A stretch of DNA of 64,000 nt from IMGVR_UViG_3300036766_002289:310001-374000; one strand, 5' to 3'; numbered from the stretch's first letter, positions 58-24,442 are shown. Made by a program: numbers and translations. Notes: a model not told the origin generated them from the sequence alone.

Positions 58-89
58 CTTAGTTGTACCAATTAGGTTGTAATTAACCC

Positions 90-1393: not shown

Positions 1394-1445
1394 GCCAAGG
1401 GGTCGCCCACCCCTGGTTCTATACCCTAGTTGTACCGAGGTTCAC

Positions 1446-1652
1446 ATGCTTATTCCCCGCGCCGTAGTGTTTGATTCAAAAGGCAAAGCTCTTTGTGCTG
1501 GCAATCCCTGCAATGGTTACTCTCATCGCACCGACTGCCGCCATACGACCATGCACCTACCATCGGAACATTTCGATTTTATCGACGTGAACGTGGAAGG
1601 CAAGACTGAGGCCGAAATCATGTATGAAATCACGGCGGAATACCACATCTAA
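1446..1652 (+). CDS. Array hypothetical protein, 68 aa, Cys/His-containing
   Basis: Partial repeat + GAGG + MLIPRAVVFDSKG. Confidence 0.7.
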   Translation: MLIPRAVVFDSKGKALCAGNPCNGYSHRTDCRHTTMHLPSEHFDFIDVNVEGKTEAEIMYEITAEYHI

Positions 1653-1672
1653 GGGCCATTCAGGTCTGAGTT

Positions 1673-1809
1673 GAGAGTGGCTTAAAATAGGAGCAAACCT
1701 ATCCGTGGCCGCATTAACTTCGGTTAGTGCCCGCCCAAGAAAGTAACGGGAGCCAACGGGAAACACCCTCCAAAAGTGGATTACCAATGACTCATCAATA
1801 ACCGCTCTT
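1673..1809 (+). ncRNA. Putative structured RNA occupying an array slot
   Basis: No SD-led ORF; closing helix GAGAGUGG/CCGCUCUU, hairpin AUAGG-agcaaa-CCUAU, hairpin GCAUUAAC-UUCG-GUUAGUGC. Confidence 0.5.
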
Positions 1810-1860
1810 ACCTTAGTTGTACCAATTAGGTTGTGATTCCACCCCAACAGGAGCAAAGTC

Positions 1861-2067
1861 ATGCTGGTTCTCGACAATCCCAAAGACATTGCCGCCTTCC
1901 GTAAGTTGGCACTACGTAGTGCTTTAGGGCTGGAAATGAAGGGCTTCAAACGGCATGGACCGTCTTGCTTCTCCATCATCAAGGCCGAATTCGGGCTGAA
2001 GGGCAACAAGCAAAAGGTCTATGACCAATTCACGGCACTGCTCAAAGAGCAAAACATCCTAGTCTAA
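1861..2067 (+). CDS. Array hypothetical protein, 68 aa
   Basis: Repeat + AGGAG + ATG. Confidence 0.85.
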   Translation: MLVLDNPKDIAAFRKLALRSALGLEMKGFKRHGPSCFSIIKAEFGLKGNKQKVYDQFTALLKEQNILV

Positions 2068-2143
2068 GGGCAGGGGTCGCCCAACCCTGGCATACCTTAG
2101 TTGTACCAATTAGGGTGTGATTCAACCCTAACAGGAGCAAGCC

Positions 2144-2377
2144 ATGCAGCAACTCGCAATCTTCAAGGATGGCAAACCTTTCGCCAACGTGCCTTGCGAC
2201 AAGGATTACTATCTTAGCCCCATATACAACGTCACTGCTCTGCCGTATGAAGTCAAGCAGAAAATCTGGAACTTCATCGGTGGTCAATCGGCTGATACCA
2301 AACATGGCGGACGTGGTTGGGACGTTGGTGAGTGGTCGTGGGAGTGGAAGACTCCCTCCGTCCATCGGAAAGCTTAG
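2144..2377 (+). CDS. Array hypothetical protein, 77 aa
   Basis: Repeat + AGGAG + ATG; TAG stop lies inside next repeat. Confidence 0.85.
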   Translation: MQQLAIFKDGKPFANVPCDKDYYLSPIYNVTALPYEVKQKIWNFIGGQSADTKHGGRGWDVGEWSWEWKTPSVHRKA

Positions 2378-2414
2378 TTGTACCAATTAGGGTGTAATTA
2401 AGGAGAACAAACCA

Positions 2415-2612
2415 ATGTACTGTGCATTCTGCCATCGTCCTTGTGGCCAACGTGAATACTGTGCCGAAGTGTGCCACCAAGAGCATGATGACGAACTGAA
2501 GTCCTTTCAGCAAGGCAATGCCGATGAACTGCCCATTGGCGATAGTTCGCAAGGCGCAAGCCGATACGGGGAGTGGGAACCAATCGAGTGGGACGTAACA
2601 GGTGGACTATAG
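2415..2612 (+). CDS. Array protein, 65 aa, N-terminal CxxC..CxxxC zinc-binding motif, acidic tail
   Basis: AAGGAG RBS; MYCAFCHRPCGQREYCAEVCH. Confidence 0.8.
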   Translation: MYCAFCHRPCGQREYCAEVCHQEHDDELKSFQQGNADELPIGDSSQGASRYGEWEPIEWDVTGGL

Positions 2613-2722
2613 CCTAGTTGTACCAATTAAGCAAATGGAGGAACGAATGAAAACAGGGTGCTACGTGGAGACTCACGGCAAAGTCTATCCCGCAAATGTA
2701 GCTAGCGAAAGGCGTTACGGCC

Positions 2723-2935
2723 TTGGCTAGTTGCGTCCCGAACGCAATGAAGACCGTAGAGGGACTATGTGAGTTCTATTGCGTTCGGTACTACGTTTGC
2801 CTGGAAGACTTCAGAATTGCCGTATACAATGCCCATGATGACAATTACCATGTCTTTCGCTGGTCAGTCAACCGCTATGTCTTAACTGGCGTCGAAGACT
2901 CAGTATCCCAAACCCATAAGGTGGGGATATCTTAG
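2723..2935 (+). CDS. Array hypothetical protein (start uncertain; a 27-aa ORF at 2647-2730 precedes it)
   Basis: ORF ends at TAG inside next repeat; weak RBS. Confidence 0.45.
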   Translation: MASCVPNAMKTVEGLCEFYCVRYYVCLEDFRIAVYNAHDDNYHVFRWSVNRYVLTGVEDSVSQTHKVGIS

Positions 2936-2977
2936 TTGTACCAATTGGGTTGTGATTTCCCAATCAGGAGCATGAAC

Positions 2978-3103
2978 ATGTGGTGGAAGTGCTTTGCTGA
3001 CGGTTCCGAGTTTGATATCATCTATGCCAACAGCAAGGACGAAGCAATCCAATTCGCCCGCCTGCGTCATGGAGAAGCAATCTGGACTGCTCGCCCTTAC
3101 TAA
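2978..3103 (+). CDS. Array hypothetical protein, 41 aa
   Basis: Repeat + AGGAG + MWWKCFADGSEFDIIYANSKDEAIQFAR. Confidence 0.75.
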   Translation: MWWKCFADGSEFDIIYANSKDEAIQFARLRHGEAIWTARPY

Positions 3104-3121
3104 ACCCTAGTTGTACCAAAC

Positions 3122-3283
3122 ATGCTGCAACAAAAGATCGAACAGAAACGGCGACTTGCCGTCCTGCGTAAACGACTCAATCGCCTTCGACTGCGTTACT
3201 TCGATCATGAGGACGCGGGCAAGGCAACGAAACATCAGCGGCTTGTCACCAAACTACTCAAGGCCATTTCCAAGGTGCAATGA
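3122..3283 (+). CDS. Array basic protein, 53 aa
   Basis: ATG directly after partial repeat; MLQQKIEQKRRLAVLRKRLNRLRLR; stop overlaps next start (ATGA). Confidence 0.65.
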   Translation: MLQQKIEQKRRLAVLRKRLNRLRLRYFDHEDAGKATKHQRLVTKLLKAISKVQ

Positions 3284-3489
3284 TGTGTCTCTGCGGCGAT
3301 ACCTATTGCTGGTCATGCGGTCCTGCTCAAGGCAATGCCCACTGTGAAGTCTGCGGCAGCTGGTCCGAAGACGGGGGCTGCGAGAATCCCGCCGAATGCG
3401 ATGCCAAGGCCCGCGAAATGGACAAGCTTTACGCGGAGCAAGAACTGGAAGCAGAACGGTTGGCCAAGGACTATCATTGGATACCTTAG
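3280..3489 (+). CDS. Array Cys-rich zinc-binding protein, 69 aa
   Basis: CLCGDTYCWSCG...CEVCG...C...C; TAG inside next repeat. Confidence 0.8.
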   Translation: MMCLCGDTYCWSCGPAQGNAHCEVCGSWSEDGGCENPAECDAKAREMDKLYAEQELEAERLAKDYHWIP

Positions 3490-3531
3490 TTGTACCGATT
3501 AGGGTGTAATTCACCCTCATAGGAGCAAGCC

Positions 3532-3702
3532 ATGAGTAAGACCAAGCGATTGCGGCTCGAAGCACGACTAAGGCGAGTGTGGCGAGATATTCAACGGGCA
3601 TTTCGTGGTGGAACATCATTCGGAATCGACGCGCCCACCCTTTGGGCATGTGAACCCGAACTTGCTGCCGAATTCTTCGCCCTTCGCAAGCAGTTAGCTT
3701 AG
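3532..3702 (+). CDS. Array hypothetical protein, 56 aa
   Basis: Repeat + AGGAG + MSKTKRLRLEARL; TAG inside next repeat. Confidence 0.8.
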   Translation: MSKTKRLRLEARLRRVWRDIQRAFRGGTSFGIDAPTLWACEPELAAEFFALRKQLA

Positions 3703-3745
3703 TTGTACCAATTAGGGTGTGATTACCCCTAAACGGAGAACTGTC

Positions 3746-4000
3746 ATGCTCGAAGACAGCAATGCCCTAGTCCACCAAAAGAACACGATCATCGACCTAA
3801 TCGACTTTCATAGCTACGAGGAAGCCATTCTGCTCCTCGCCTTCACCAAAGAACTTTGGGAAGAGTGCAGCTACGGTTATAAGTGGAAAGAACTGCAAGA
3901 TCGACTGCTGACCACACTCAGAAGCCAGCAAGAGGAAAACACTCACTGGAAGCAAGTCAAATCGCTCCAAGCAATCGCACAAAGGGTAATCAAACTATAA
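3746..4000 (+). CDS. Array hypothetical protein, 84 aa
   Basis: Repeat + GGAG + ATG 3746. Confidence 0.8.
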   Translation: MLEDSNALVHQKNTIIDLIDFHSYEEAILLLAFTKELWEECSYGYKWKELQDRLLTTLRSQQEENTHWKQVKSLQAIAQRVIKL

Positions 4001-4004
4001 GAGG

Positions 4005-4032
4005 AAAAGGCAGGGTAAAACCTGCCTTTTTT
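4005..4032. terminator. Intrinsic terminator, probably bidirectional
   Basis: AAAAGGCAGG-gtaaaa-CCTGCCTTTTTT. Confidence 0.85.
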
Positions 4033-4125
4033 CATTTCAAATAGGAATTGGTACAACTATGTTTTAATAACTTATAGCTTAGTTGTACCAATTAGGGTGT
4101 AATGCAACCCTAACAGGAGCAAGTC

Positions 4126-4323
4126 ATGCGATTTGAAGTCTATGCCAAGTATGGCAATCGCTGGTCTTACAAGGGCATTTATCAGGCCCGCGATAGCCGA
4201 CTGGCGGCTTATCAGGCTCAATACTCCACTGGCCGTAACGTTCTCAAGGTGCGGCCCGAAGATTCGCGGGACAAGTTCCTCGTCTACCGCATCACTTCTG
4301 CCCCGACTGTCACGGCAGGATAG
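4126..4323 (+). CDS. Array hypothetical protein, 65 aa
   Basis: Repeat + AGGAG + ATG. Confidence 0.85.
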   Translation: MRFEVYAKYGNRWSYKGIYQARDSRLAAYQAQYSTGRNVLKVRPEDSRDKFLVYRITSAPTVTAG

Positions 4324-4376
4324 CCTAGTTGTACCAATTCAGTTGTGATTCACCCTTAACCCCTTGGAGTCAAGTC

Positions 4377-4619
4377 ATGGCCACTGTCCTCGCTACTGGT
4401 CTTACCGCCACGGTTCGCTACACGGAGGTCCGCTCCGAAGGCCCCAACGGGCGTCGGAAGCTCCTCACCGAAGTCCGCGTAATGGCGGGCCAATTCGAGG
4501 TCGCAACCAAGACGTTGGCTGGCCGTTGGAGCCAGCAACAGGCCATGCGGGAGTTCAAGCGACTCCCAAAGGGCTGGTCCGTCAAGGACGCGGCAATGGC
4601 ACTGCTGCCCGCCGCCTAG
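4377..4619 (+). CDS. Array hypothetical protein, 80 aa
   Basis: Repeat + GGAG + MATVLATG...ALLPAA. Confidence 0.8.
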   Translation: MATVLATGLTATVRYTEVRSEGPNGRRKLLTEVRVMAGQFEVATKTLAGRWSQQQAMREFKRLPKGWSVKDAAMALLPAA

Positions 4620-4700
4620 AGGTGGGGCCATGAGGCCCTTCCTGGTCTATACCCTAGTTGTACCAATTAGGGTGTAATTCCCCGAAACTGGAGAACAGTC

Positions 4701-4901
4701 ATGATTGCCCTTGAACATGCGGCGCAAATGGTCGCCAAACTGCGTCAAGTCGATCAGAATGACGCAATGGAACTGTTCTTCCACTTTGATGATGTTTTCA
4801 AACTCAGCGACATGTACCGCCCCGATGACAATGGCAAATATATCATCATGTTTGCTGACCTCTGCGGGTATGGTATCGCCACCAACGTCAAGATAGCCTA
4901 G
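4701..4901 (+). CDS. Array hypothetical protein, 66 aa
   Basis: Repeat + GGAG + ATG; TAG inside next repeat. Confidence 0.8.
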   Translation: MIALEHAAQMVAKLRQVDQNDAMELFFHFDDVFKLSDMYRPDDNGKYIIMFADLCGYGIATNVKIA

Positions 4902-4944
4902 TTGTACCAATTAGGTTGTGATTACCCCCTAACTGGAGAAGACC

Positions 4945-5205
4945 ATGCTCGAATCAATCCAGCAAGACTTCATCGACGAAGGCTATCAATGGCATGAACA
5001 CATTTTCAATGACGGTCATGCCGAGTGCATGATTGAATTCACGAAGGACAAAAGCCCGCAAGCTCTTTCAACTTACCCACGTCCTGCCGATTGCGTCGGT
5101 TGGGGACGCTTTCCCCGCCTTCACGCATGGCAGCAGGCCCACGACTGGCTTCGCCAGCAAATCATTCGGGCGCAGATAGATGAATATGATGACGCAAGCT
5201 GTTAG
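4945..5205 (+). CDS. Array hypothetical protein, 86 aa
   Basis: Repeat + GGAG + ATG. Confidence 0.85.
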   Translation: MLESIQQDFIDEGYQWHEHIFNDGHAECMIEFTKDKSPQALSTYPRPADCVGWGRFPRLHAWQQAHDWLRQQIIRAQIDEYDDASC

Positions 5206-5294
5206 GGGTGGACGAGGGGACTGCCAACCCTCGCCTGGTCTATACCTTAGTTGTACCAATTAGGGTGTGATTAACCCCTAAACGGAGAACAGTC

Positions 5295-5573
5295 ATGTAC
5301 TACCTGACCTTGACCACTGCCGAACGACACGCCATTGATTGGGTCGGGCACCGCTATGACCACGGTTACGACCTTTACAAGCTGCTATGGGTCGAATCGG
5401 AACAAACTGACAATTCCCTTGATTGGGACAGCGACGATGATATTACTTTCCGCATTCCCGAAGCGGTTAGCTGGAAAATCGCCATGATTGGCGAACAATG
5501 CGGGCACCTTTGGGATTGTTTCAGCAACGCGCTGGCTCTGAAGCTGAATGAATTTTGTATGGAAATTGTTTAG
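5295..5573 (+). CDS. Array hypothetical acidic protein, 92 aa
   Basis: Repeat + GGAG + ATG. Confidence 0.85.
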   Translation: MYYLTLTTAERHAIDWVGHRYDHGYDLYKLLWVESEQTDNSLDWDSDDDITFRIPEAVSWKIAMIGEQCGHLWDCFSNALALKLNEFCMEIV

Positions 5574-5678
5574 GGGTGGGTTGGGGGAATGCAAACCCCA
5601 TCCTGGCTTTATAGCCTAGTTGTACCAATTAGGTTGTAATTCACCCCAAACCCCATCGCTCTGAGCCACGAGGACTAC

Positions 5679-5816
5679 ATGGAGGCCATTGACCGCGAAG
5701 ACGACACGGACGAAAGCCATCTCTTCGACAACACCGACTATGATCCGCTGGACGACGGTATCCTCGAAGACGAGGACGACGAGTACGAAGTCGAATTCGA
5801 GGAAGAAGACGACTGA
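5679..5816 (+). CDS. Very acidic 45-aa protein (25 D/E), possible DNA mimic
   Basis: MEAIDREDDTDESHLFDNTDYDPLDDGILEDEDDEYEVEFEEEDD; GAGGA upstream. Confidence 0.65.
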   Translation: MEAIDREDDTDESHLFDNTDYDPLDDGILEDEDDEYEVEFEEEDD

Positions 5817-5906
5817 CCTTCACGGCGGGGACTTCCACCCGCCACCTGGCTTCATACCTTAGTTGTACCAATTAAGGTATGATTCACCCCCAAACGGAGC
5901 CAAGTC

Positions 5907-6149
5907 ATGAAGCCGACAACGCAACCGTGGCGAACGTATGAACCAACATGGGCCGAACGTTTGGCCCGCACGACGTTGACCAAATGGCAATTGATGGACG
6001 CTTTCTTTGGCAGTGGTCGTCTCACCGTTAACGGTATTGAAGTCGGACTGGCTTCGATGCAACGTGAAGACGGAAGCGGTAGTTCTTTCAATCTGATTCT
6101 CAACAAGGGCCTCAACAGCTACGCTTGCTATTGTCGAACAACGGATTGA
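5907..6149 (+). CDS. Array hypothetical protein, 80 aa
   Basis: Repeat + GGAG + ATG. Confidence 0.85.
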   Translation: MKPTTQPWRTYEPTWAERLARTTLTKWQLMDAFFGSGRLTVNGIEVGLASMQREDGSGSSFNLILNKGLNSYACYCRTTD

Positions 6150-7919: not shown

Positions 7920-7992
7920 AGTATTATTTAGTAGTAAACTGGTGGAAGTTAATAAAAACGGATTTTTGATTAGTTTTCTAGTATATATGGTC

Positions 7993-8634
7993 ATGTATAG
8001 ATTCAAAGAGTGGTTATCAAGAAGGGATGAGGTAAGTTACAATCCAAATCTTGGGAATGTCTTACCGAATGCAGTTCAGCAGAATCAGGATTTTTCTTTA
8101 CCTACGGCGGCGATGAAGACAGGTGCAGCGGCATTACAGGGTGTAGGGGCACTGGCAGGTGGGATGGTAGCGGCGTTGAGTGGGATACCAGTGACGATAC
8201 AGGCGATGCAGGGGGCAAAGGCAAGGTTTGAGCGGGCACAGGGTTATGTGTTAAATTACTTATTAAAGAATCCACAGGGTAAGGATTTTCTTTTATCTAA
8301 GGTAGATGAAGTATTGGCATTTTTGGAGAGTAATAAGGATACGGGGGTAATAAGTGGTGGTGGTAACTTACCTGCTGTGAACATGGGTGGGGTGCATGGT
8401 GGGACGACTGCGGCGTTATGGAGGGGGATAAGTACATCGTTTAGGAATTTATATGATACGTTGATGAACAAGAGTAATTACGATGTTGCATACAAGAAGT
8501 TCTTGGATCAGTACAAGGTAATGTTTGAGTCATTGGGGGAGATGACTAAGGAAGTGGCGTATGGGAAGTTAAGGGCATTTAAGCAGGCGGCATCTAGGCC
8601 AGACAATTATATTGATCCAGATACGATGAAATAA
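7993..8634 (+). CDS. Hypothetical protein with capsid-targeting-like N-terminus
   Basis: TATATA 7982-7987 then MYRFKEWLSRRDE. Confidence 0.7.
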   Translation: MYRFKEWLSRRDEVSYNPNLGNVLPNAVQQNQDFSLPTAAMKTGAAALQGVGALAGGMVAALSGIPVTIQAMQGAKARFERAQGYVLNYLLKNPQGKDFLLSKVDEVLAFLESNKDTGVISGGGNLPAVNMGGVHGGTTAALWRGISTSFRNLYDTLMNKSNYDVAYKKFLDQYKVMFESLGEMTKEVAYGKLRAFKQAASRPDNYIDPDTMK

Positions 8635-8648
8635 GGATATATAAAGTC

Positions 8649-8834
8649 ATGAAGACATTTCAAGATTGGTTAAAAGTTAAGGAATCGACTGCATTTACTA
8701 GGAGTAGGAATGCGGCTGCGTTGGGTATAGGTCCATCAATACCAGATGCGGAGATTAACAGTCACGATACGGCGCGTCCTTGGGTATCAAAGGCGATTCA
8801 GAAGAGGAACAAGAAGAAGAAAAAGAAGATGTGA
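8649..8834 (+). CDS. Small protein with capsid-targeting-like N-terminus and poly-Lys tail
   Basis: MKTFQDWLKVKE...KKKKKKM. Confidence 0.75.
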   Translation: MKTFQDWLKVKESTAFTRSRNAAALGIGPSIPDAEINSHDTARPWVSKAIQKRNKKKKKKM

Positions 8835-9590: not shown

Positions 9591-10202
9591 CTATTTAAAC
9601 CCGTATGCAACGCTAACTTTGAGGCTAATCTCTGGGAGGTGGATATGGTCGCACAGTTTATGTTTTTTTGCTTCTTTGGCATCTAAGTACCATTCTGCGT
9701 GTGCTTTATGATGAATGATGTCTAGGAAATAGTCAGGTAGTTGTCCACAATTTTTGGAGAGTAGGCCAAAAATCTGTTTATTGAGTTTTTCAGTTTGTTT
9801 AATATCTGCTTTTAGTTCTTCGACTTTGCCGCCGATAAAGTTAGAAACATCATGCAGCATAAGGGTAGCATGTTCGGACATAAAACGCAAGCCTTTATTT
9901 CCGAATCCGAAGATAATTCCGCCAGCTGACATGGCTTTGGATTCACAGATGGTGGCGACTGGTAATTTGCAATTTTGAATTTCTGAAATCATGGAAAGGC
10001 AGGCATATACTTGACCGCCGTAGGAATCGACGACGATAGGTACAATAGTTTGTCCAGTGTTACAGGCTTTATTAATGTCTTCTGAGAAGTGTTTGGAGCC
10101 ATCTTCGTCAAATTTGGTTATTCTGACGACGATAGGTAGGTCAATAACATCTTCGACAGTTTTTATTTTGAGTCTGGGGTCAATTTCGATTTTTCTGAGC
10201 AT
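9591..10202 (-). CDS. clpP: ClpP-like serine protease (S14)
   Basis: DSYGGQVY, AMSAG (catalytic Ser), LMLHD (His), WYLDAKEAKKHKLCD. Confidence 0.85.
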   Translation of the reverse strand: MLRKIEIDPRLKIKTVEDVIDLPIVVRITKFDEDGSKHFSEDINKACNTGQTIVPIVVDSYGGQVYACLSMISEIQNCKLPVATICESKAMSAGGIIFGFGNKGLRFMSEHATLMLHDVSNFIGGKVEELKADIKQTEKLNKQIFGLLSKNCGQLPDYFLDIIHHKAHAEWYLDAKEAKKHKLCDHIHLPEISLKVSVAYGFK

Positions 10203-10819
10203 TGAATTTCCCTTGCGAGCCAGATTATTCTATTTTTAATGATATAGGTGACACTACAATTGGTGATTTTGCCTATATTGGATATACAGTGGGTGATTTT
10301 TACTACATTTTGGATAAAGTCTGTATGTGTAACAAGTATAGATTTTTCTGGGATAAAGTCAAGGACTTGCATTAATCTGTTACAAAAATCGCTATCATTT
10401 TCATGACAAGTTCGTTTACTTAGGTCTGTGCAGGGTAAAAATGGGATGGGGCAATTTTCGCTTATGATTGCGGATGTTTCGGTACATCTATAATAGGGGC
10501 TACAGAAGCCGACGAAGCCTTGGAGTTGCATATTGGTAAGGAATTTAGCGGCAGTTTCGGCTTGTTTACGGCCTAGTTCTGTGAGTGGGCCATTTTCTTG
10601 GGTGGTAGGGCTTTCGGCATGGCGAAGGATTATAATTTCCTTCAGGTAAATAATTTGGTTTTCATCGGACACAAACTTTAGTTTTTTGCAATCAAGGAAG
10701 CCAGACTTCAGGTCGCCATTTTTTTCTTTTTCTGTTAGTTTGCTAAAGGCATCACCGTGATTTGGACCAGTGACGATTTTATCATCCGTTAAAATAGCTG
10801 GGACCATGTAAGCCTCCAT
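10163..10819 (-). CDS. Histidine phosphatase superfamily protein
   Basis: LRHAE, LTELGRKQA, SPYYRCTET, LVTH. Confidence 0.8.
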   Translation of the reverse strand: MEAYMVPAILTDDKIVTGPNHGDAFSKLTEKEKNGDLKSGFLDCKKLKFVSDENQIIYLKEIIILRHAESPTTQENGPLTELGRKQAETAAKFLTNMQLQGFVGFCSPYYRCTETSAIISENCPIPFLPCTDLSKRTCHENDSDFCNRLMQVLDFIPEKSILVTHTDFIQNVVKITHCISNIGKITNCSVTYIIKNRIIWLAREIQCSEKSKLTPDSK

Positions 10820-10828
10820 TCTTCATAT

Positions 10829-11656
10829 CTACTTATCAGATGAGTTTTTATAGGAATTAATAACTTTACCAACATAGTCCATTACTTTATTAGCGTTATA
10901 TTTAAGTAGTACTTCATAAGGGTCGCCCATGCCGAACACAGTTGGTGGTTCAAAGCGGAACATATTTTTGTGGAAATAGGGTGGTAGACCGCGTTTGTAA
11001 TGGATGAGTTTTTTAAGTTCATTATCCAGTAGGTTATTTTCGATATTAACAGTGCCGTAATAGGTTAGATGACCATAATATTCCAATAATGTCAATGCCC
11101 AAGCAGTTTTTTCTGAATCTACCCAATTAGGTTGAGTTTTTGAAAAATAGTCAGCAAATTCTAGGACTCTTTTGATGAATTGGTCTGGTATTTTTTCGAT
11201 ACATATTGTATCGCCTAATGGAAGCCACAGTTCTTCTTTGATATTTTTTGCTTCTCTTACGGTTTTCACAAAATCTTCTGATCTACTTTTTTCGACTGTA
11301 AATTCTGGGTCCATTTGGAAAACAATGTCGATGGAGCTAGATTCAAATGGTTTTATTAGAATTGTATCTGGATGAAGGATTGTCACAGGTGGTTTTAGTA
11401 GATTCTTGGTCAGGGCAACATAGAGTCCGTATATTCGATTAAAGCTTGGACAGCCTTTATCTCGACCTATATTATCATGCACAAAGACATTTTTATGGTG
11501 GCGAAGGTTTTTAGCTTCGGTATAGATTGGTTGATTATTCTCAGCTAGACCGATGGTTAGCGAGTCTTGCAAATTGTGCATTTTGAAACTTTCAATAAGA
11601 AGTTCCAATTGCCAATGGTGATAGGCTATGTTTTCTGCGCTTACGAAATAATGCAT
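10829..11656 (-). CDS. Putative glycosyltransferase resembling GT95/GT96 protein O-glycosyltransferases
   Basis: FVSAE..Y.HWQ.ELLIESF, PSFNR, ILHPDTILIKP pattern recalled from those families. Confidence 0.45.
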   Translation of the reverse strand: MHYFVSAENIAYHHWQLELLIESFKMHNLQDSLTIGLAENNQPIYTEAKNLRHHKNVFVHDNIGRDKGCPSFNRIYGLYVALTKNLLKPPVTILHPDTILIKPFESSSIDIVFQMDPEFTVEKSRSEDFVKTVREAKNIKEELWLPLGDTICIEKIPDQFIKRVLEFADYFSKTQPNWVDSEKTAWALTLLEYYGHLTYYGTVNIENNLLDNELKKLIHYKRGLPPYFHKNMFRFEPPTVFGMGDPYEVLLKYNANKVMDYVGKVINSYKNSSDK

Positions 11657-11657
11657 A

Positions 11658-11963
11658 TTAGTTTTCTATAAAATTCTCTAAGAACAAACGATAGACTTTG
11701 CTATAGGCTTTGCCCCAATTGGGTCCATGAACATCATTATCTTTATCCCACGCAACGGCATGAGCGACTTCATGGATCATCACATCAATTGAGTAATTTT
11801 CGGATAAAATTCTGTTTATTTTGATGTGGAAGCCATTCTTTTTAAGTTCACATTGTCCATCTAATGAAGAATTGAGTTTAACTCTTCTGATAACAAGGGG
11901 CTTTTCGGCCAGATTGCTATTTTTAAAAAATGTCGCCACACGGCGATAGAGGTCGTAATCCAT
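11658..11963 (-). CDS. Small zinc metallopeptidase (SprT-like)
   Basis: HEVAH...HGPNW. Confidence 0.7.
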   Translation of the reverse strand: MDYDLYRRVATFFKNSNLAEKPLVIRRVKLNSSLDGQCELKKNGFHIKINRILSENYSIDVMIHEVAHAVAWDKDNDVHGPNWGKAYSKVYRLFLENFIEN

Positions 11964-11996: not shown

Positions 11997-12659
11997 TTAA
12001 ACTGAGTAGTTTTTGCCACTTCGAACGTCATATATAAGAATACTGCGTAAATTAGGCCATTTATCTTTTAAATTTCTACCAAGTTCCAAGAATTTTGATA
12101 TATGTTCGGCTCGATCTTCGAATACTTCGACAGTTTGTATTTCTTGCGACATAAGGCGGTTAATAATCACGAATGCTTTATAGTCAAAGGTATCGTTAGA
12201 TTTAGGGTATTCTGGGTGGCTAGTTAGGTCTTTCTGACCTTTAAAGAAATATTCATTTGCATGGACGCCATAGCTTGAAAGAATTTCTTTAACGCGATCT
12301 TTCAGGGCTGCGTGTCTTCCTGTCATAATTACTGTATAGGTTTGTGGGTCATTATGGAAGGATTTTAGTGCATTAGCTACGTTAGGATTAAGTTTATCTG
12401 GGGTTGGGTGAAAGATAGGTGGGTGGAGTGTTTCTTGTCTGCCCCACCAACCAGTTCTTCTAAATTTAGGGTCAAAACCATTTTGTATGGCAGTATCTTT
12501 ATCTTTTACGTACCAGGGTTTGCCAGTACTTTTTTCATATTCTGGGATACCTTCTTCGGGGGTTGGGGTAAACACAAGGGTATCATCGAAGTCAATAATG
12601 ACTAGGCGATTGATCCCTGTTGGGGCACTTTCCATAAACGTTTTGAAATTAAGCTTCAT
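11997..12659 (-). CDS. HAD phosphatase, Swiss-Army-knife RNA-repair type
   Basis: IDFDDTLVFTP, GWW, MTGR, DTFDYK, FEDR motifs. Confidence 0.75.
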   Translation of the reverse strand: MKLNFKTFMESAPTGINRLVIIDFDDTLVFTPTPEEGIPEYEKSTGKPWYVKDKDTAIQNGFDPKFRRTGWWGRQETLHPPIFHPTPDKLNPNVANALKSFHNDPQTYTVIMTGRHAALKDRVKEILSSYGVHANEYFFKGQKDLTSHPEYPKSNDTFDYKAFVIINRLMSQEIQTVEVFEDRAEHISKFLELGRNLKDKWPNLRSILIYDVRSGKNYSV

Positions 12660-14169
12660 TTGGCTTGGTCATATTCTGACGGAACTTATTGGTTTCAATG
12701 GACTTAATAGCGTTTCCAAATTCTTCGCCTTGTGGTATTTTGCCGCCAAGTTGTTGAATAATTTCTGGGTTGATAGTTTTTCTATCGCCATCTTGCACAT
12801 AGCCTTTAGTTTGAAGGTTATGGTTCATAAACTTACCAATAATATCTTCTGGTAGTTTATTCATTCTTCCCCATTGTTTAGCGAGGCTAGGAACGATGCC
12901 TGTTCTATGGAAATCTTTTTTCATATCATAGAACTTATCAAAGAATGCTTGTGGATTTTGTCCATGAGAAGAAACCCACTTAGAAAGTTCGATTAAGTGA
13001 GTAATATCACGGATTTCATCATTGGTCCAGGTGCCTTGTTTTAGGACTTGTTCGATCTTATTGGTTGGGTTATTTCTCAATAGCCAAGCGATAGCGAGTC
13101 TTTTTTCTTTCTTATCGCTGAAGTCTTCTGGGGCATCTAGTTTAAACTGTAGGTCTGGGAATACGGTATTAAGTAGTCCAAGGTCTTTGAACAATTTAAC
13201 ATATTGAGTTGGGTCAACATCTGGGTGTTGTAGGCCCTTTAGGAATTCGTCTCTAATACGTTCACGGCTTACAGATGGAAGGTCTTTAATATCCAAGATA
13301 GCTTCTTTTACTTCATCTGGAATCTTGGTATTTTTACCGTGAGAAGCGACGAAGCGGAGGTAACGCATAGCTCTTAGTTGGTCTTCTTCTAGGCGTTCTT
13401 TGGCATTGCCAACGAACTTAACTTCACCGCTTCTAATGTGGTGAGCGCCGCCGTGTGGGTCAATAAGTTTGGAATTGGCACCGTCTGATGAGGTTAGTGG
13501 GATGTACATGGAGTTCATAGTGAAGTCTCTTCTTTGTGCATCGTCATCTAGTCCAGCGAATTCCATACGATCTGGGGTGCGGCCATCGCCGCTTTTTGAG
13601 TCTTTTCTGAAGGTTGCAATTTCGAATTCTTCACCATTAACTCTAGCACCGATTACGAATTCTTTGCCGCTACGATCCCAGCCTTTGGCGTAGAAAATTT
13701 TGCTCTTATTACCAGCTTCTGGGTGTTTGTCATACTTTTTATCTACAGGAGCATTCTTACCAGTTTGTGGTTTAGTTTCAGCGAAGCCTGCGCTTCTAAG
13801 GATAAGTCTAATTTCATCTGGGGTAGCATCTGTGGCAAGGTCATAATCTTTAGGTGTTTTGCCTTTAAGATGATCTCTTACAGCGCCGCCAACAAGGTAT
13901 AGACCTTTCTTTTTTAATTTAGGTGTAGTTTCACCTTTGGCGTCGATAGTGGTTAGTTTCTGTGGATAGCCATCTGGACCTGGGAAATTAACTTGGCCGC
14001 TATCAAGGAAAGCCTTGATGATGGTTCTTAGGTTTGGATGGTGTTCCGCATCGACTGTGAATGGCTTAAAGTCACTATCGTCACCGAGTTTAACTTCGGA
14101 GGGTGCTTTCTTTCCACCTTCTTCTACATTTTCTTTCAAGCTCAAATATTCTAAAAAAGTTTTTCTCAT
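12649..14169 (-). CDS. cca: tRNA nucleotidyltransferase (CCA-adding)/poly(A) polymerase family
   Basis: VGGAVRD..DYDLATD, RRDFTMN, EDQLRAMRYLRF, SRERIRDE. Confidence 0.9.
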   Translation of the reverse strand: MRKTFLEYLSLKENVEEGGKKAPSEVKLGDDSDFKPFTVDAEHHPNLRTIIKAFLDSGQVNFPGPDGYPQKLTTIDAKGETTPKLKKKGLYLVGGAVRDHLKGKTPKDYDLATDATPDEIRLILRSAGFAETKPQTGKNAPVDKKYDKHPEAGNKSKIFYAKGWDRSGKEFVIGARVNGEEFEIATFRKDSKSGDGRTPDRMEFAGLDDDAQRRDFTMNSMYIPLTSSDGANSKLIDPHGGAHHIRSGEVKFVGNAKERLEEDQLRAMRYLRFVASHGKNTKIPDEVKEAILDIKDLPSVSRERIRDEFLKGLQHPDVDPTQYVKLFKDLGLLNTVFPDLQFKLDAPEDFSDKKEKRLAIAWLLRNNPTNKIEQVLKQGTWTNDEIRDITHLIELSKWVSSHGQNPQAFFDKFYDMKKDFHRTGIVPSLAKQWGRMNKLPEDIIGKFMNHNLQTKGYVQDGDRKTINPEIIQQLGGKIPQGEEFGNAIKSIETNKFRQNMTKPNEA

Positions 14170-14279
14170 AGCTTTACCTTATTATTATTTATGGTTTGGC
14201 TCAAATTTTCTATAGAATAATAGACCGTCTTTTTCTAATTGGTTCTAGGAAAAACTCAAATTTAGCCTAAATAATTATT

Positions 14280-18033: not shown

Positions 18034-18088
18034 GGAACAAAAGATACAAGAAATGAAAAAATAAATCAATATCATCCTAAATACTTTG

Positions 18089-18577
18089 ATGGAAAAGTTT
18101 TTTCAATTTATTGACAAAAAAGAAAGAGAAGCCAAACATCAGCTAAAGATTATTGAGAAAATCCTTGGTGGGCATGGCTTTACGGTCAAAGACCATATCA
18201 ATGACGATGACCCATATGTGTTTGTTTACAATCCAGCAAAGAACACATTTTTTGATGGGATTCGCGTCTACAAGGTGGGGGATCAGTTGTCTTTCCGAGT
18301 TCAGAAAGAAGAAAAGACACACCCATTTGGCAGGGCATATCCATTAGCAATTGAGGACATGTTTACGGATTTAGTATCAGACCACAAACCTGAAGAAGCT
18401 GGCAAAAAGATTATTGAAGCGGTTTTAACAGAAGTGAAGAAGTTTTTTGAAAAGAGTTCGGAGGCAGAAAAGGATATCAGGGACAAGCAGTTTGACAAAG
18501 ACCCATTTGGTAAGGTTCAGGTTAGAAGTTCAGATTTTGGAATGGATTATAGTAACCTCACATATCAAAAAGCATGA
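18089..18577 (+). CDS. Hypothetical protein
   Basis: TAAATA upstream; MEKFFQFIDKKE. Confidence 0.75.
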   Translation: MEKFFQFIDKKEREAKHQLKIIEKILGGHGFTVKDHINDDDPYVFVYNPAKNTFFDGIRVYKVGDQLSFRVQKEEKTHPFGRAYPLAIEDMFTDLVSDHKPEEAGKKIIEAVLTEVKKFFEKSSEAEKDIRDKQFDKDPFGKVQVRSSDFGMDYSNLTYQKA

Positions 18578-20282: not shown

Positions 20283-20290
20283 TATAAATA
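20283..20290 (+). promoter_or_regulatory. T4-type late promoter TATAAATA (example of recurring TA[A/T]ATA boxes)
   Basis: Exact T4 late consensus ahead of the tail cluster. Confidence 0.65.
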
Positions 20291-20297: not shown

Positions 20298-23200
20298 ATG
20301 TTGGACTCCCTTGGTAGAGACGTAGGCGATATTAAGAACAATGTGCAGGCTATTAAAACTCAAATGTTGCAAGACATTGGGAAATCGGCCAAGGCTAATG
20401 GTTCCGACCCAAATAATAAGGAAGTTTTAAATAAAATTGCCACTCAACTAGAGACTATTGTTGGTTACAAACTAGATGTGCAATTTAAAGCTTTCAATAA
20501 GGCGCTGAATGATCTTGCTGAAGCCTGTGAAGACCTCGATAAAAAAAAGGAAGATTTTAAAAAAGAAGCCAAAGAAATGGCGAAAGCAATTAACAATGAT
20601 CCTACTGCAAGGGCTAACCATGCATTATTGCAAAACATAGCTGCCAACAAAGTAAATATCGGCGGCGGTGGAACAGCAAAACCAATTCCAGGACAACCCC
20701 GCGCTATTTCATCTATAAATAGCGGTGTTAACATAATAAGTAAATTTTTCCAAAATATGGTCGGTTTATTTAAAAAGAATAAAGGTATAGCAAGCGTGGC
20801 AGCAGGGACAACAGGTATGGGTGGTGGAGGTGGACCACCTCCACCAAAACCAGTGGCTGCTGGTGGTGAAGATGATGAGAAGAAGAAGAAAGAAACATGG
20901 AAAGAGTTCTTTAAAAGAACAGGGCAAGATCGTGGCAGTGAAATGACGGGGGTACTAACAGGTGGAAAGCCAATAGAGGCTATTGTAACTGGCTTGGGTA
21001 ATTTATTAAGTAAAGGTTTAAGTAGTATTCCATTTGTAGGTGGGTTTTTAGGGGGGTTATTAGATGGTATATTAAAGCCACTATCTGATGAGTTAGAATA
21101 CATTCGTGACATGTCTCGTGGTATGCTTAACACTTATGGGACTGGCATAGAAAACCTTAAGGGAAAAGTAGACGAATTTAGAGAGGCGTCACTTAAAACA
21201 GTGAGTGTTACAGGTCAAAGTCAATCACTTATATTAAAAGAACAAGCGAAGTATTACAAGAGGGGTATAACCGACCTCAAAACTCAAAATAGTGTTATGC
21301 GTGCTGGTTTACAGACTGCCACATTGATAAATTCTGATGCCGCTGAGACCTCTAGCATGTTTGCAGATTGGAGTCAACATCTTGGGGCATCAGAACATCA
21401 ACTTAACATGATGGGTCGTGGTTTAGTTAATATAGGAAGACAAAGTGGTTTGACAGGTCAAAATTTACTTCAAGTGGCAAAGGATTCTAAAACCTTCATG
21501 GAGAATATGAGATTGGCTGGAACATTCACAGCAAGCGCCGCCAATAACATCATGGGTATTATGGCTCAGGCACAAAAAACTGGTACGACGGCAGGCACTA
21601 GCAGAATTATGGCTGGATTAACTGGTGGTTTAATTGGCCCAGCTGTAGATGAAGGTACAAAAAGTACAATAATGAAGGCAGGTGGCTTAGGTGGTGCCAA
21701 CATGATGGACCTTTTGGCTGGTACTGGAACGGAAGACCCAGAACAAATGAAACGAATCGCTAGTGGAATGGAGAAGTTAATTAGAATCTACAGTGGCGGT
21801 AAAAATCTAAATCAAATGACAATGCAGGAACGTGGCCTTGCGAGTCAGAGGATGGAGATTGGCGAAAGAGGACTTAAACTAAATGAAGCAGTATTAATTG
21901 CGCAAAACTTACGTAAAGGAGCCATGTCTTTTGATGAACAATTGGCAGAGATTGGAGATAAATTAAACAGAAAGATTTATGCACCAGAAGAAGCACGAGT
22001 ATTAAAAGAAAACGTTTTATTTGAAAAAGCGGATAAAACAATAGAAGGTTTTAGGGACAATATGGAGCAAGCAAATCCAGAATTAAAAGACGCTTTAGAC
22101 CAACAGGTGGCAATAGTTAATGCTAGGTCAAAGGAAGCGGGTGGTGCTGGTTTTTCCAGAGATGCTGGAGAAAGTAACGCAACATTATTAGAAAGAATAC
22201 AAAAAGTTAACCAAGAAGCCGTTATAGCAGCAGAAAAGAAAAAAGACCCTTCTTTGAAACTTCTAAGTGATATTTATGAGATTGAGGCAATGATAAGGGA
22301 ATATGTGTATGATGCAGTTTTTAATTTATTGCCGTTGATTGCAACAGCTACTGGTGCGGTTCAAGAATGGGTTAGAAAAGCGTCCACTTTTATTAAAGAG
22401 ACTGTATTCCCATTTTTCACAACTGAGTTATTTCCATTATTTGAGAGAATTGGGGATTGGGTTTTTGGTATTTTCAAATTTCTTGACCCAAGAAGTGCTG
22501 CCGAAATTGTTGCAAACAGTCCTTTAACTAAGAAAATGAAACAAGATGTAGAAGATCAGCGTCTTGCTAATGCTGCCAATGCTGCTGGTGGGTTCGCAAA
22601 CATGTCTCCAGCTGATCTTGCTAAAAAAAAGGCGGCAGTTGAGCAGGCACTTGCGGATAAGCAGGCAGTAAAGCCAGGGCTTGCGCAGGATATTAAAGAT
22701 GCAATGGCGGTTAAGAGAGAAAAAGAATTTTTTGGGGCAGGACTTGTGCCACAAATTGCAGAAATTTTTCTAACCCCTGTTTGGAAAGCAAACGACATAA
22801 AAGAAAAACAAGCAAGAGAAGCATGGACAAAATTAGATGATTCTACAAGAGTGTTGCAGAAAGACCTACAAGGTATTCAAACTCAAGAAACTTTTAATAA
22901 AGCCCTTCAAAATGCACAAACACCAGAACAAAGACAGGATGTTCAGACTAAAATGGACAGGTATTATGAGTTGCAAAGAAAATCTGATGAGAATGTCGGG
23001 CCACGGGGCATTTTAGATAAACTTAAGGCATTCCCAGAAATGCAAAATATCTTAAAAGAAGTAGGTAAAATGGCTTCAAACGCCGATAAGCCTGGTTCTA
23101 TTTATACCCATGATGAATATCTTGAGGAATTGTTGCAAGGTGTGCCATCTTTAGTATCCGCAGCTATGCCAGGTGTAAATGTAGATGAAGAAGTTAAGAA

Positions 23201-23474
23201 AAGACAAATTGCCATTGACAATAGTAATGCAGAAATTGAAGCGAACACTAGTGATACAGCAAGCAACACTCGTCAAACGAATGTCTTACTAGGCACGCTT
23301 TTGAATGTCATAAGTAGGTCAGCTAGAAGGAGGGGCACAGATACACCAATTGCTGGGGAGGATGTTGATGATTCAGTATTTTTTGACCAGTTTATAGATG
23401 TTGATTGGGTCGATACGATAGCCAGAATGGTTGGTAATACATGGGCACAAGGAAACCCAGGTAAGCATAACTAA
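20298..23474 (+). CDS. Tape measure-like protein
   Basis: 1058 aa, Ala/Gly/Gln-rich helical composition, precedes baseplate genes. Confidence 0.7.
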   Translation: MLDSLGRDVGDIKNNVQAIKTQMLQDIGKSAKANGSDPNNKEVLNKIATQLETIVGYKLDVQFKAFNKALNDLAEACEDLDKKKEDFKKEAKEMAKAINNDPTARANHALLQNIAANKVNIGGGGTAKPIPGQPRAISSINSGVNIISKFFQNMVGLFKKNKGIASVAAGTTGMGGGGGPPPPKPVAAGGEDDEKKKKETWKEFFKRTGQDRGSEMTGVLTGGKPIEAIVTGLGNLLSKGLSSIPFVGGFLGGLLDGILKPLSDELEYIRDMSRGMLNTYGTGIENLKGKVDEFREASLKTVSVTGQSQSLILKEQAKYYKRGITDLKTQNSVMRAGLQTATLINSDAAETSSMFADWSQHLGASEHQLNMMGRGLVNIGRQSGLTGQNLLQVAKDSKTFMENMRLAGTFTASAANNIMGIMAQAQKTGTTAGTSRIMAGLTGGLIGPAVDEGTKSTIMKAGGLGGANMMDLLAGTGTEDPEQMKRIASGMEKLIRIYSGGKNLNQMTMQERGLASQRMEIGERGLKLNEAVLIAQNLRKGAMSFDEQLAEIGDKLNRKIYAPEEARVLKENVLFEKADKTIEGFRDNMEQANPELKDALDQQVAIVNARSKEAGGAGFSRDAGESNATLLERIQKVNQEAVIAAEKKKDPSLKLLSDIYEIEAMIREYVYDAVFNLLPLIATATGAVQEWVRKASTFIKETVFPFFTTELFPLFERIGDWVFGIFKFLDPRSAAEIVANSPLTKKMKQDVEDQRLANAANAAGGFANMSPADLAKKKAAVEQALADKQAVKPGLAQDIKDAMAVKREKEFFGAGLVPQIAEIFLTPVWKANDIKEKQAREAWTKLDDSTRVLQKDLQGIQTQETFNKALQNAQTPEQRQDVQTKMDRYYELQRKSDENVGPRGILDKLKAFPEMQNILKEVGKMASNADKPGSIYTHDEYLEELLQGVPSLVSAAMPGVNVDEEVKKRQIAIDNSNAEIEANTSDTASNTRQTNVLLGTLLNVISRSARRRGTDTPIAGEDVDDSVFFDQFIDVDWVDTIARMVGNTWAQGNPGKHN

Positions 23475-23482
23475 GGAGATTA

Positions 23483-24082
23483 ATGCCAAGGGGAACTGAA
23501 AGAAGTGGTCGTTTAGCAGTATTGAGCAAGTGTAAGATCATTACACCTTGCGGTACTATCTGTCTAAGAATTCTACCAGATATTTCTGACAGCAAAGGCG
23601 CAAACTATGCCCAAGAAAATGCCATAGGTAGAAGTAATCCTATGATTACTTTCGCTTATTCTGAGCCAAGAATGATTAATACAGAACTCCGCTTCATGAC
23701 AACTACCACGGATGACATAAATGATAACTGGCGCTCAGTAAGTATAATAAAAAGTTTAGTTTATCCTGGCACAGCGACTGTTGATGGTGGGGCACCTTTT
23801 ACGCCGCCACCTGTAGTAAAGTTTGTTTGCGGTGATTTAATGGATGGTCCTAATGGACTTTGCCTGATACTTAAAAACTATAACTTAAGATGGCCTACTA
23901 ATGTAGCATGGGATGAAGAAACTTATCTGCCATATCAGTTTTCAATAAGTTGCAGTTGGGAAGTTGTATATGCCTGTAAGAACTTGCCATCTAATAATTG
24001 TAGTACATGCGCTCCTGATAGTCAAGTAGATTGCGAACCAATTACTGGTGTTGGCATACCTTATGTTGCTGGAGGGGGGTAA
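23483..24082 (+). CDS. Baseplate/tail-tube initiator-like protein
   Basis: GRSNP...SLVYP...PPPVVKF pattern; position. Confidence 0.6.
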   Translation: MPRGTERSGRLAVLSKCKIITPCGTICLRILPDISDSKGANYAQENAIGRSNPMITFAYSEPRMINTELRFMTTTTDDINDNWRSVSIIKSLVYPGTATVDGGAPFTPPPVVKFVCGDLMDGPNGLCLILKNYNLRWPTNVAWDEETYLPYQFSISCSWEVVYACKNLPSNNCSTCAPDSQVDCEPITGVGIPYVAGGG

Positions 24083-24107
24083 TCCAAAACCGATTACGGG
24101 GTAAAAT

Positions 24108-24434
24108 ATGGCCAATGAAATGAGTTATACGAATTATGGAACTAAAAACTTAGTCACGGCAACTAGTCGTTATGCATATAGGTCCGTAGTACATTACGGT
24201 AGTTTAAATAAGGTCACATTTGCCATTTATAAAACACCTGCAATCGGCCCATCTTCAGATGATAAGTTTTATGAGATAACTAAAGAGGTAGAGTTTAGAC
24301 CAGATTTAGTATCTTTCAGGTTCTATGGATTGCCAGATTTTTGGTGGCGTATTATGGAAGTAAATAAGATGAAGGATATCATGGAGTTCAGAGCGGGCAG
24401 AAATATAAGATTGCCTGGTGGTTCATTGATGTAA
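24108..24434 (+). CDS. gp53-like LysM baseplate wedge protein
   Basis: RPDLVSFRFYGLPDFWWRIMEVN. Confidence 0.8.
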   Translation: MANEMSYTNYGTKNLVTATSRYAYRSVVHYGSLNKVTFAIYKTPAIGPSSDDKFYEITKEVEFRPDLVSFRFYGLPDFWWRIMEVNKMKDIMEFRAGRNIRLPGGSLM

Positions 24435-24442
24435 GGAGGAAT

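Follow-up and report, generated by a model that had tools for sequence, protein, structure and literature searches.

Conserved N-terminal leaders on a CCA-type nucleotidyltransferase and a HAD phosphatase of an uncultivated huge phage as possible capsid-loading signals

The stretch of DNA analysed here, referred to as the window, comprises 64,000 nucleotides (nt), i.e., bases 310001-374000 of the virus record IMGVR_UViG_3300036766_002289 (390,039 bp, 39% GC), and positions are those of the window unless they are given as genome positions. It contains two overlapping genes encoding a class II CCA-adding-type tRNA nucleotidyltransferase (hereafter the CCA enzyme) and a phosphatase of the HAD_SAK_1 family (hereafter HAD), both of which begin with a short conserved leader. 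There is little doubt that this leader is a functional, portable N-terminal signal, and the two enzymes quite probably act on the 3' ends of tRNA. By analogy with phage T4, the leader may be a propeptide that loads proteins into the capsid, for which the chances are evenly balanced. The whole explanation, i.e., a T4-type capsid-loading propeptide on a packaged pair of enzymes that mends tRNA 3' ends, is given a probability of about 50%.

According to this explanation, a TAAATA box would drive the operon of the two genes, and the leader would bind each protein to the scaffolding core of the prohead and would then be cut off after its terminal Glu by a protease of the gp21 type. The mature enzymes would lie with the DNA in the head and would enter the next host cell alongside it. 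There, the phosphatase would remove the 3'-phosphate left by a ribonuclease and the nucleotidyltransferase would then rebuild or add the CCA. Late timing, core binding, cleavage, packaging, injection and the biological purpose, of which counter-defence is one possibility, are inferred from the genomic evidence presented below.

The leader and the two enzymes that carry it

On each of the two enzymes, the leader starts with M, followed by one to three residues, F, two variable residues, an aromatic and an aliphatic residue, and closes with a hydrophobic-x-Glu end, giving a total of 10-13 residues. Six such leaders had been pointed out in the window by an initial annotation made from the sequence alone; all of them, the overlap of the CCA enzyme and HAD genes (11 nt) and the TAAATA box in front of the pair were confirmed when the open reading frames (ORFs) and their translations were read (Table 1).

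Counts of motifs and boxes are based on a simple gene call on the 390,039-bp record, which gave 705 genes. The strict form of the leader motif, F-x-x-[FWY]-[LIMV]-x(0-4)-[DE] with its F at residue 3-6, was present in 15 of these genes, where its frequency in the remainder of these proteins would predict 2.0 (Poisson P = 5e-9), the motif having been defined after looking. Because of this post hoc choice, the test was repeated with the motif unchanged on 400 kb of G001, a divergent relative (532 kb, 53% GC) whose CCA enzyme is 46% identical, and 11 genes were found against 1.45 expected (P = 4e-7). The genome-wide search thus bore out the enrichment at N-termini. When GTG and TTG starts were included in a looser scan, about 20-25 plausible leader genes were obtained in the record.

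Within the family of the CCA enzyme, the leader was present in 96 of the 120 best hits in the form M-[RK]-x-[STL]-F-x-[EKND]-[YF]-[LFVMI]-x-[LFI]-[RK]-E. In an alignment of 98 sequences with a mean column identity of 43%, F5 formed one of the 23 invariant columns and E13 was kept in at least 90%. Homologues at 31% identity that have a shorter N-terminal extension still retained the leader (e.g., MKFKQWLFSEE), and the only versions that begin directly at the head domain were bacterial-like ones. Close homologues of HAD have the leader in the form x-L-x-F-[KR]-x-F-[MIV]-E, and E10 is retained in at least 90%. Taken together, the leader is kept in four unrelated families, i.e., those of the CCA enzyme, HAD and the 61-aa (amino acid) and 213-aa proteins described below, down to about 30% identity. 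The closing residues differ in part between the families, being [LFI]-[KR]-E in that of the CCA enzyme (in 96 of 96 anchored sequences, the anchoring pattern itself fixing the Glu), F-M-E in HAD and W-L-E, V-K-E, R-D-E or K-K-E in other leaders; the Glu is constant.

The codons used at conserved leader positions are diverse (Leu as TTG, TTA, CTT or CTC; Arg as AGA, CGT, AGG or CGA; Ser as TCN and AGT) and the substitutions are conservative at the peptide level. Since synonymous and six-fold codons vary freely, selection acts on the leader peptide and not on an RNA element. The leader also lies outside the folded part of both enzymes. In the AlphaFold2 model of the CCA enzyme, built with 98 homologues (mean predicted local distance difference test score, pLDDT, 90.5), values below 50 occurred at residues 1-3 and 13-20; a helix was weakly predicted for residues 2-16, and the fold was confident from about residue 24. 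The model of HAD (pLDDT 92.6) had residues 1-9 as its sole segment below 50. Outside these segments the values were above 79. In both models the leader, with the linker in the case of the CCA enzyme, was the sole N-terminal part of low confidence, and confidence climbed sharply after the Glu. A linker of G, S, E and K with variable length follows the leader Glu in homologues of the CCA enzyme. A conserved sequence outside the fold behaves like a linear signal.

The 506-aa protein matched Pfam PolyA_pol (PF01743, 2e-26) together with PolyA_pol_RNAbd, and phrog_2244 (tRNA nucleotidyltransferase, 2e-49). The head-domain motifs GGAVRD (residues 94-99), DxD (in DYDLATD) and RRD (in RRDFTMN) are present, and motif D (EDxxR) is represented by EEDQLR at residues 261-266, which aligns with EEDALR of a solved CCA-adding enzyme and in which D263 is nearly invariant among 98 homologues. 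Bacterial poly(A) polymerases carry a motif similar to EDxxR and are not excluded by this motif alone. The top NCBIfam match was CCA tRNA nucleotidyltransferase (NF009814) with 141 bits, under the cut-off of 290, and the PcnB subfamily scored 115 bits against a cut-off of 306; no NCBIfam equivalog cut-off was reached. The best sequence matches in the PDB were CCA-adding enzymes. When the model was ranked against PDB folds, places 1-9 were taken by CCA-adding enzymes over about 435-470 columns, i.e., the whole length of head, neck, body and tail, and the poly(A) polymerase of E. coli came 10th with a lower TM-score. The catalytic head begins near residue 89 and carries an insertion of about 50 residues; in front of it, residues 24-88 are predicted to form an extra domain that is confidently folded and conserved within the family. 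With no equivalog cut-off reached, the protein is a divergent phage branch with a putative CCA-adding activity.

For the 220-aa HAD protein, the Pfam match (PF10307, 3e-14) scored 53.5 bits, above the cut-off of 25.6, and D23, D25 and T27 of the DxDxT motif are invariant among 37 homologues. The best PDB fold for its model was Pnkp1 of the bacterial RNA-repair complex Pnkp1/Rnl/Hen1, a weak match (E 4e-4), and the fold of the T4 PNK/phosphatase was also among the matches. A HAD gene lies at most 1.5 kb downstream of the CCA enzyme gene in 18 of 50 distinct related loci. The enzyme identities proposed by the initial annotation are thus supported for both proteins by families, motifs and folds, although for the CCA enzyme the equivalog score falls short as given above.

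Head genes, promoter-like boxes and further leader proteins

A T4-type head module is present in the genome, comprising a portal protein, a 621-aa protein, an S77 protease, a 311-aa protein and a capsid protein of the Gp23 family (PF07068, E 9e-89). The protease (Peptidase_S77, PF03420, E 1e-29; genome 379265-379924) is 32% identical to T4 gp21 and has kept the catalytic His and Ser motifs GELDHP and SSRG. The 311-aa protein is charged, helical or coiled and scaffold-like, and sits between the protease and capsid genes as gp22 does in T4, the order of protease, scaffold-like and capsid genes being that of T4. One leader ORF, of 99 aa (MKTFSQYYRLRE), is located inside this module. The capsid protein itself starts MSANARFLNE/AKE and has four [LF]-x-E sites within its first 47 residues. 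The S77 protease was found on three of five contigs bearing leadered CCA enzyme genes, the remaining two contigs being 34% and 79% complete, and two complete phages with leaderless CCA enzyme genes were also without it, a sample that is small though it agrees in direction. Predicted as a complex, the gp21-like protease and the first 40 residues of the CCA enzyme scored 0.00, which counts neither for nor against cleavage. As a separate observation, the portal protein (window 62561-64000 and beyond; L003 561-2927) has 788 aa against 524 in T4, and its stretch from C-V-I-G-N-T-L to V-M-H-N-C looks like an intein.

In T4, propeptides of 10-20 residues attach internal proteins to the scaffolding core and are then removed by gp21; these capsid-targeting propeptides can load foreign proteins and mark diverse proteins that counter defence (PMC5694885, PMC3012670). 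The T4 record was read directly, and ipII and ipIII start with MKTYQEFIAE, as the initial annotation had stated; ipI starts with MKTFKEFTS and has ITE/A at residues 17-20, and gp24 starts with MAKINELLRE. The leader MKTFQDWLKVKE at 8649 and its homologue MKTFAEFIKMKE are very close to MKTYQEFIAE and MKTFKEF, and the other leaders share the F-x-x-aromatic-aliphatic core only. In the same T4 record (AF158101, 18966-19130, minus strand), gp61.1, a hypothetical protein of 54 aa encoded beside the primase gene, starts with MKTFKEFIKE, a near-perfect capsid-targeting-like leader on which the annotation is silent.

The TAAATA hexamer lies at most 40 nt upstream of 48 of the 705 genes against 13.6 expected. 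In 28 genes it ends 4-6 nt before the ATG, leaving no room for a Shine-Dalgarno sequence, and other genes, including those of the CCA enzyme (16 nt) and the head protease (17 nt), have a Shine-Dalgarno sequence after the box; most genes of this genome use sites of the AGGAG type. TATATA next to starts is also enriched (25 against 2.0 expected). Of 45 distinct relatives, 32 have TAAATA within 50 nt upstream of the leadered CCA enzyme gene, where 1.3 would be expected; it stands 5-42 nt from the ATG, with a Shine-Dalgarno sequence between. This spacing and the intervening Shine-Dalgarno sequence rule out that TAAATA serves as the ribosome-binding signal of the gene, and the box is the phylogenetic footprint of a promoter-like element.

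TAAATA also precedes the protease-scaffold-capsid operon of the head and the first gene of the baseplate module, in which baseplate wedge proteins were identified by PHROGs. Because the same type of box stands before the head-protease and baseplate operons, the operon of the two enzymes is likely to be expressed together with the structural (late) genes. Among genes that have a TAAATA or TATATA box, those with a leader are over-represented 11-fold (11 of 21 against 60 of 684 other genes, Fisher P = 8e-7). The late-type box of the initial annotation is therefore upheld as a conserved element shared with structural operons, but it is only the TAAATA core that is kept and not the octamer, since the two bases preceding the core vary when compared with TATAAATA. 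With T4 gp55 as a single-sequence query nothing was found in the genome. The gp55 late-sigma profile phrog_234 found a 108-aa ORF (genome 78810-79136, minus strand; E 2e-4) with a sequence resembling sigma region 2, for which phrog_234 was in turn the sole PHROG match, again a weak one (E 3e-4); the ORF is a weak candidate for a gp55-like late sigma factor. It lies immediately downstream of two leader genes (genome 79140-79358 and 79517-79939).

In about 60 genes a TAAATA or TATATA ends 4-6 nt ahead of the start codon and a Shine-Dalgarno sequence is lacking (in the window with boxes at 7982-7987, 8638-8643, 14268-14273, 18078-18083 and 54295-54300). If the boxes are -10 elements, these genes would probably give leaderless or nearly leaderless mRNAs. 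Four paralogues of 212-348 aa at genome 96481-109347, starting ML[KQ]-[LTQ]-[TSV]-[LVI]-[AV]-[VI], each have a TATATA box of their own.

Table 1. Coordinates of the leader genes, boxes and neighbouring genes in the window
Feature	Position	Strand	Remarks
CCA enzyme (class II CCA-adding-type tRNA nucleotidyltransferase), 506 aa	12649-14169	-	Starts MRKTFLEYLSLKE; extended N-terminally by about 88 aa
Leader of the CCA enzyme, residues 1-13 (MRKTFLEYLSLKE)	14131-14169	-	Ends L-K-E; based on conservation and model
HAD_SAK_1 phosphatase, 220 aa	11997-12659	-	Starts MKLNFKTFMES; DxDxT at residues 23-27
Leader of HAD, residues 1-10 (MKLNFKTFME)	12630-12659	-	Ends F-M-E; based on conservation and model
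TAAATA box, promoter-like	14186-14191	-	16 nt upstream of the ATG of the CCA enzyme gene
AAGG, Shine-Dalgarno-like	14177-14180	-	Between the box and the ATG of the CCA enzyme gene
Divergent TAAATA box	14268-14273	+	6 nt before a 151-aa gene at 14280
TATAAATA, full T4 late-promoter octamer	20283-20290	+	First gene of the baseplate module (20298-33137) follows after 7 nt
TATATA box and 213-aa leader protein	box 7982-7987, gene 7993-8634	+	Starts MYRFKEWLSRRDE; no Pfam or PHROG family
TATATA box and 61-aa leader protein	box 8638-8643, gene 8649-8834	+	Starts MKTFQDWLKVKE, then STAFTR...; lysine-rich tail
TAAATA box and 162-aa leader protein	box 18078-18083, gene 18089-18577	+	Starts MEKFFQFIDKKE; box 5 nt before ATG; no family
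TAAATA box and 56-aa leader protein	box 54295-54300, gene 54305-54475	+	Starts MELNFKKWLES; box 4 nt before GTG start; basic tail
SprT-like gene	11658-11963	-	Without leader
Unknown 275-aa gene	10829-11656	-	Without leader
His_Phos_1, branch-1 histidine phosphatase	10163-10819	-	Without leader
ClpP-like protease	9591-10202	-	E 1e-19; without leader

Among about 30 leader- or box-bearing proteins scanned against Pfam and PHROG, almost all were without a family, and most leader proteins are in this respect like the internal proteins of T4. For the 213-aa protein, an in-frame ATG (7987) and a GTG (7942) lie upstream of the start at 7993, which is favoured by the homologues and by the TATATA box; its family keeps the leader M-x-x-F-x-E-[YW]-x-x-R-R-D-E down to 29% identity. 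In the family of the 61-aa protein, 23 homologues (one of them reading MKTFAEFIKMKE) retain the leader, the K-E/S-T-A-F junction and the basic tail, with the pattern MKTF-x-[DE]-[WF]-[LMIV]-K-x-K-E, after which comes an almost invariant STAFTR...GPSIPDAEINSH block. In G001 a leader (MTSSFREWLEATE) stands directly before a NUDIX hydrolase domain (L136:17341-17757, minus strand), and another leader protein of the same genome has a weak match, below threshold, to S-adenosylmethionine lyase. The 61-aa and 56-aa proteins with their lysine-rich tails recall the small basic internal proteins of T4. Converging on the 56-aa gene is a 103-aa ORF (54472-54783, minus strand) that consists almost entirely of Asp and Glu with long runs of poly-Asp. 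A primase-like protein (51450-52451) fits the loose motif and was set aside as a probable false positive.

The genes downstream of HAD on the same strand (9591-11963) probably belong to the same operon. One of them encodes the ClpP-family protease, which sits beside the two enzyme genes in addition to the S77 prohead protease located elsewhere and is a possible alternative reader of an N-terminal tag. A wider counter-defence set had initially been proposed, including a 2H phosphoesterase, a CYTH protein and the histidine phosphatase. The 2H-superfamily protein (60380-60970, plus strand) and the histidine phosphatase both exist but neither carries a leader, and a scan of window proteins, which covered part of the small ORFs, yielded no CYTH protein. 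The 2H protein has a weak profile match to the anti-CBASS protein Acb1 (21 bits, below cut-off) and could degrade cyclic nucleotide signals rather than heal RNA. RtcB was searched for and is absent from the 390,039-bp record.

As to the source genome, a protein identical to the CCA enzyme was found on a contig of 590,099 bp, and the 390,039-bp record may therefore have been trimmed from a genome that measures about 590 kb. Among public phages, the nearest is an uncultured genome of 595 kb with 71% nucleotide identity. The 48 tRNA genes of the phage lie at genome 21736-302457 and are mostly clustered at 21-74 kb; the anticodon CUA of one of them (genome 170512-170586) would pair with the amber stop codon. 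The first part of the window (1-6000) belongs to an island of about 20 kb (genome about 295-316 kb) with 46-50% GC against about 38% elsewhere. This island is full of short ORFs, includes two paralogues starting MR[YF]WIR[HL][EA]DL[KR]TANY and may be foreign or recently acquired DNA.

Weighing packaging against rival explanations

Several observations weigh against a T4-type propeptide and a packaged pair of enzymes. Two residues before the Glu, where T4 has L or I, several leaders have W, F, K or R. A matrix trained on the present leaders placed T4 IPI 4th of 271 ORFs and missed IPII and IPIII, which have Tyr for Phe. T4 gp61.1 has a leader-like start and is not known as a virion protein. In one phage bearing the S77 protease, the CCA enzyme is bacterial-like and has no leader. 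A box is missing from about half of the leader genes and some have TATATA, so their timing may differ. In several relatives the HAD orthologue beside the CCA enzyme gene has no leader and starts straight at the catalytic DxD; since such orthologues exist, joint tagging of the two enzymes does not hold for the clade as a whole, and the original idea of a paired kit packed together is not supported. A 3' CCA is encoded in none of the 48 tRNA genes, and therefore the CCA enzyme would be needed for ordinary maturation of phage tRNAs whether packed or not and can be accounted for without any defence scenario. A tblastn search found no leader-bearing homologue in cultured phages, and matches in the sequencing-run search came solely from DNA metagenomes (sediment, soil and fresh water), with no RNA or protein sets. 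Of the capsid-targeting character initially ascribed to the leaders, what stands is a conserved, modular N-terminal signal resembling that of T4 in a phage with T4-type head genes; the looser residue two before the Glu and the failure of the matrix on IPII and IPIII limit the likeness.

The missing CCA ends are also a ground for supposing that the enzymes are not packed and work only inside the infected cell, where the CCA enzyme would mature the 48 tRNAs, HAD would heal RNA ends generally and the leader would have another role. CCA enzymes and stand-alone SAK-type HADs have already been described as intracellular RNA repair of jumbo phages (PMC7824862, PMC7162821), which fits this possibility, as do the leaderless HAD orthologues and an Rnl2-like RNA ligase of the record that has no leader. 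It is nevertheless unlikely, if by no means far-fetched, as it leaves unaccounted for a tag that lies outside the fold on four unrelated families and about 20 orphan proteins, and the protease-type end of this tag where the phage encodes a protease of the gp21 type; maturation of tRNAs does not, moreover, preclude packaging. Should the leader be a signal unrelated to the capsid, it could mark proteins for degradation by the ClpP-like protease, whose gene runs in the same transcription direction, or be another tag for assembly or location. N-terminal degrons of similar length are established for ClpXP and ClpAP, and in T4 gp61.1 the motif occurs without known packaging. Yet in sequence the leaders come closest to the capsid-targeting sequences of T4, their constant acidic end, two positions after a hydrophobic residue, fits cleavage of the gp21 type, and one leader ORF lies inside the head module while leader genes share boxes with structural operons, so that a role of this kind seems rather improbable.

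Doubt about the nucleotidyltransferase itself, which might be a poly(A) polymerase or an enzyme adding CC only or A only, arises from its score of less than half the CCA cut-off with PcnB models matching too, from the insertion in its head, and from the family of poly(A) polymerases and CCA enzymes being hard to split by sequence (PMC2532741). This is judged distinctly improbable, because both the best sequence matches and the best folds are CCA-adding, with the E. coli poly(A) polymerase only 10th, the motifs GGAVRD, DxD, RRD and EDxxR are present, the 48 tRNAs need CCA and the gene is linked to an RNA-end phosphatase. Finally, the leaders could reflect chance or composition, e.g., A-rich unstructured codons after the start, given that many of the genes with a box at 4-6 nt perhaps give leaderless mRNAs, whose first codons may be under selection at the RNA level. 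This explanation is largely refuted and can hardly be credited: the enrichment recurs in the 53% GC genome of G001, the codons are diverse and the substitutions conservative, and most relatives still keep the tag where the 5' leader of the CCA enzyme gene is an ordinary one that includes a Shine-Dalgarno sequence.

Comparison with known systems

Phage counter-defence has been studied mostly as gene expression after entry, and T4 injects a few ready-made proteins (IPI*, Alt). If the leader does load proteins into the capsid, huge phages would carry an injected proteome much larger and enzymatically richer than that of T4. tRNA 3' ends would be restored, or phage tRNAs finished, at time zero before any phage gene expression, which bears on how tRNA-directed abortive-infection systems are withstood, and the pair would be the first virion-delivered tRNA repair system. 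A tag that works like the T4 signal would also provide a simple sequence rule for predicting the virion cargo of uncultivated phages, and a short portable loading peptide. Independently of packaging, the TAAATA box and the class of genes with a box at 4-6 nt are annotation rules usable for this clade. A still broader proposal, offered tentatively and with somewhat less than an even chance, is that a clade of huge uncultivated phages with T4-type heads has expanded T4 capsid targeting into a general cargo tag, by which dozens of proteins per genome, including CCA enzymes, RNA 3'-phosphatases and NUDIX enzymes, would be injected.

Repair of tRNA by phage enzymes is known from T4, in which the PNK/phosphatase PseT and RNA ligase 1 (Rnl1) repair tRNA-Lys cleaved by PrrC; both are made after infection and ligate a break in the anticodon loop. 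The present pair is like PseT in that a phage HAD-type 3'-phosphatase would heal the tRNA end for a second enzyme to finish. It is unlike PseT and Rnl1 in that the partner is a CCA-type nucleotidyltransferase at the acceptor end, a kinase domain is lacking and the enzymes are possibly pre-loaded.

With the T4 capsid-targeting sequences (those of IPI, IPII and IPIII and the propeptides of Alt and gp24), the leaders share the position at the extreme N-terminus and the length of 10-20 residues and, to a degree that varies from leader to leader, the hydrophobic-x-Glu end and the core M-K-T-[FY]-x-[ED]-[FW]-[IL]. In both cases the cargo is unrelated, fast-evolving and mostly small, and the phage that bears the tag also has a protease of the gp21 type, a scaffold and a capsid of the gp23 type. 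The differences are that about 20-25 proteins per genome are tagged here, against a handful in T4; that these include recognisable enzymes (the CCA-type nucleotidyltransferase and HAD, and NUDIX in a relative); and that the anchor is Phe here and Tyr in T4, with the residue two before the Glu often aromatic or basic.

In phiKZ-like giants such as SPN3US, many head-internal proteins are loaded by means of N-terminal propeptides that a gp21-related protease removes after Glu (PMC5694885). Those propeptides are, in contrast, mostly longer than 100 residues, with an A/S/G-x-E motif and an S80 protease, whereas short T4-like tags occur here together with S77.

CCA-adding enzymes and HAD_SAK phosphatases are part of the RNA-repair equipment of jumbo phages (PMC7824862, PMC7162821), and the pair described here belongs to the same enzyme families as those sets, with the same presumed work on damaged tRNA ends (Iyer et al. 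2021; Al-Shayeb et al. 2020). In contrast to the present interpretation, these two accounts treat the enzymes as intracellular and, in the portions available, describe no N-terminal tag, late-type box or packaging. The results of this study suggest that the principle of T4 capsid targeting and the RNA repair of jumbo phages, each of them known, have been combined and greatly expanded in an uncultivated clade.

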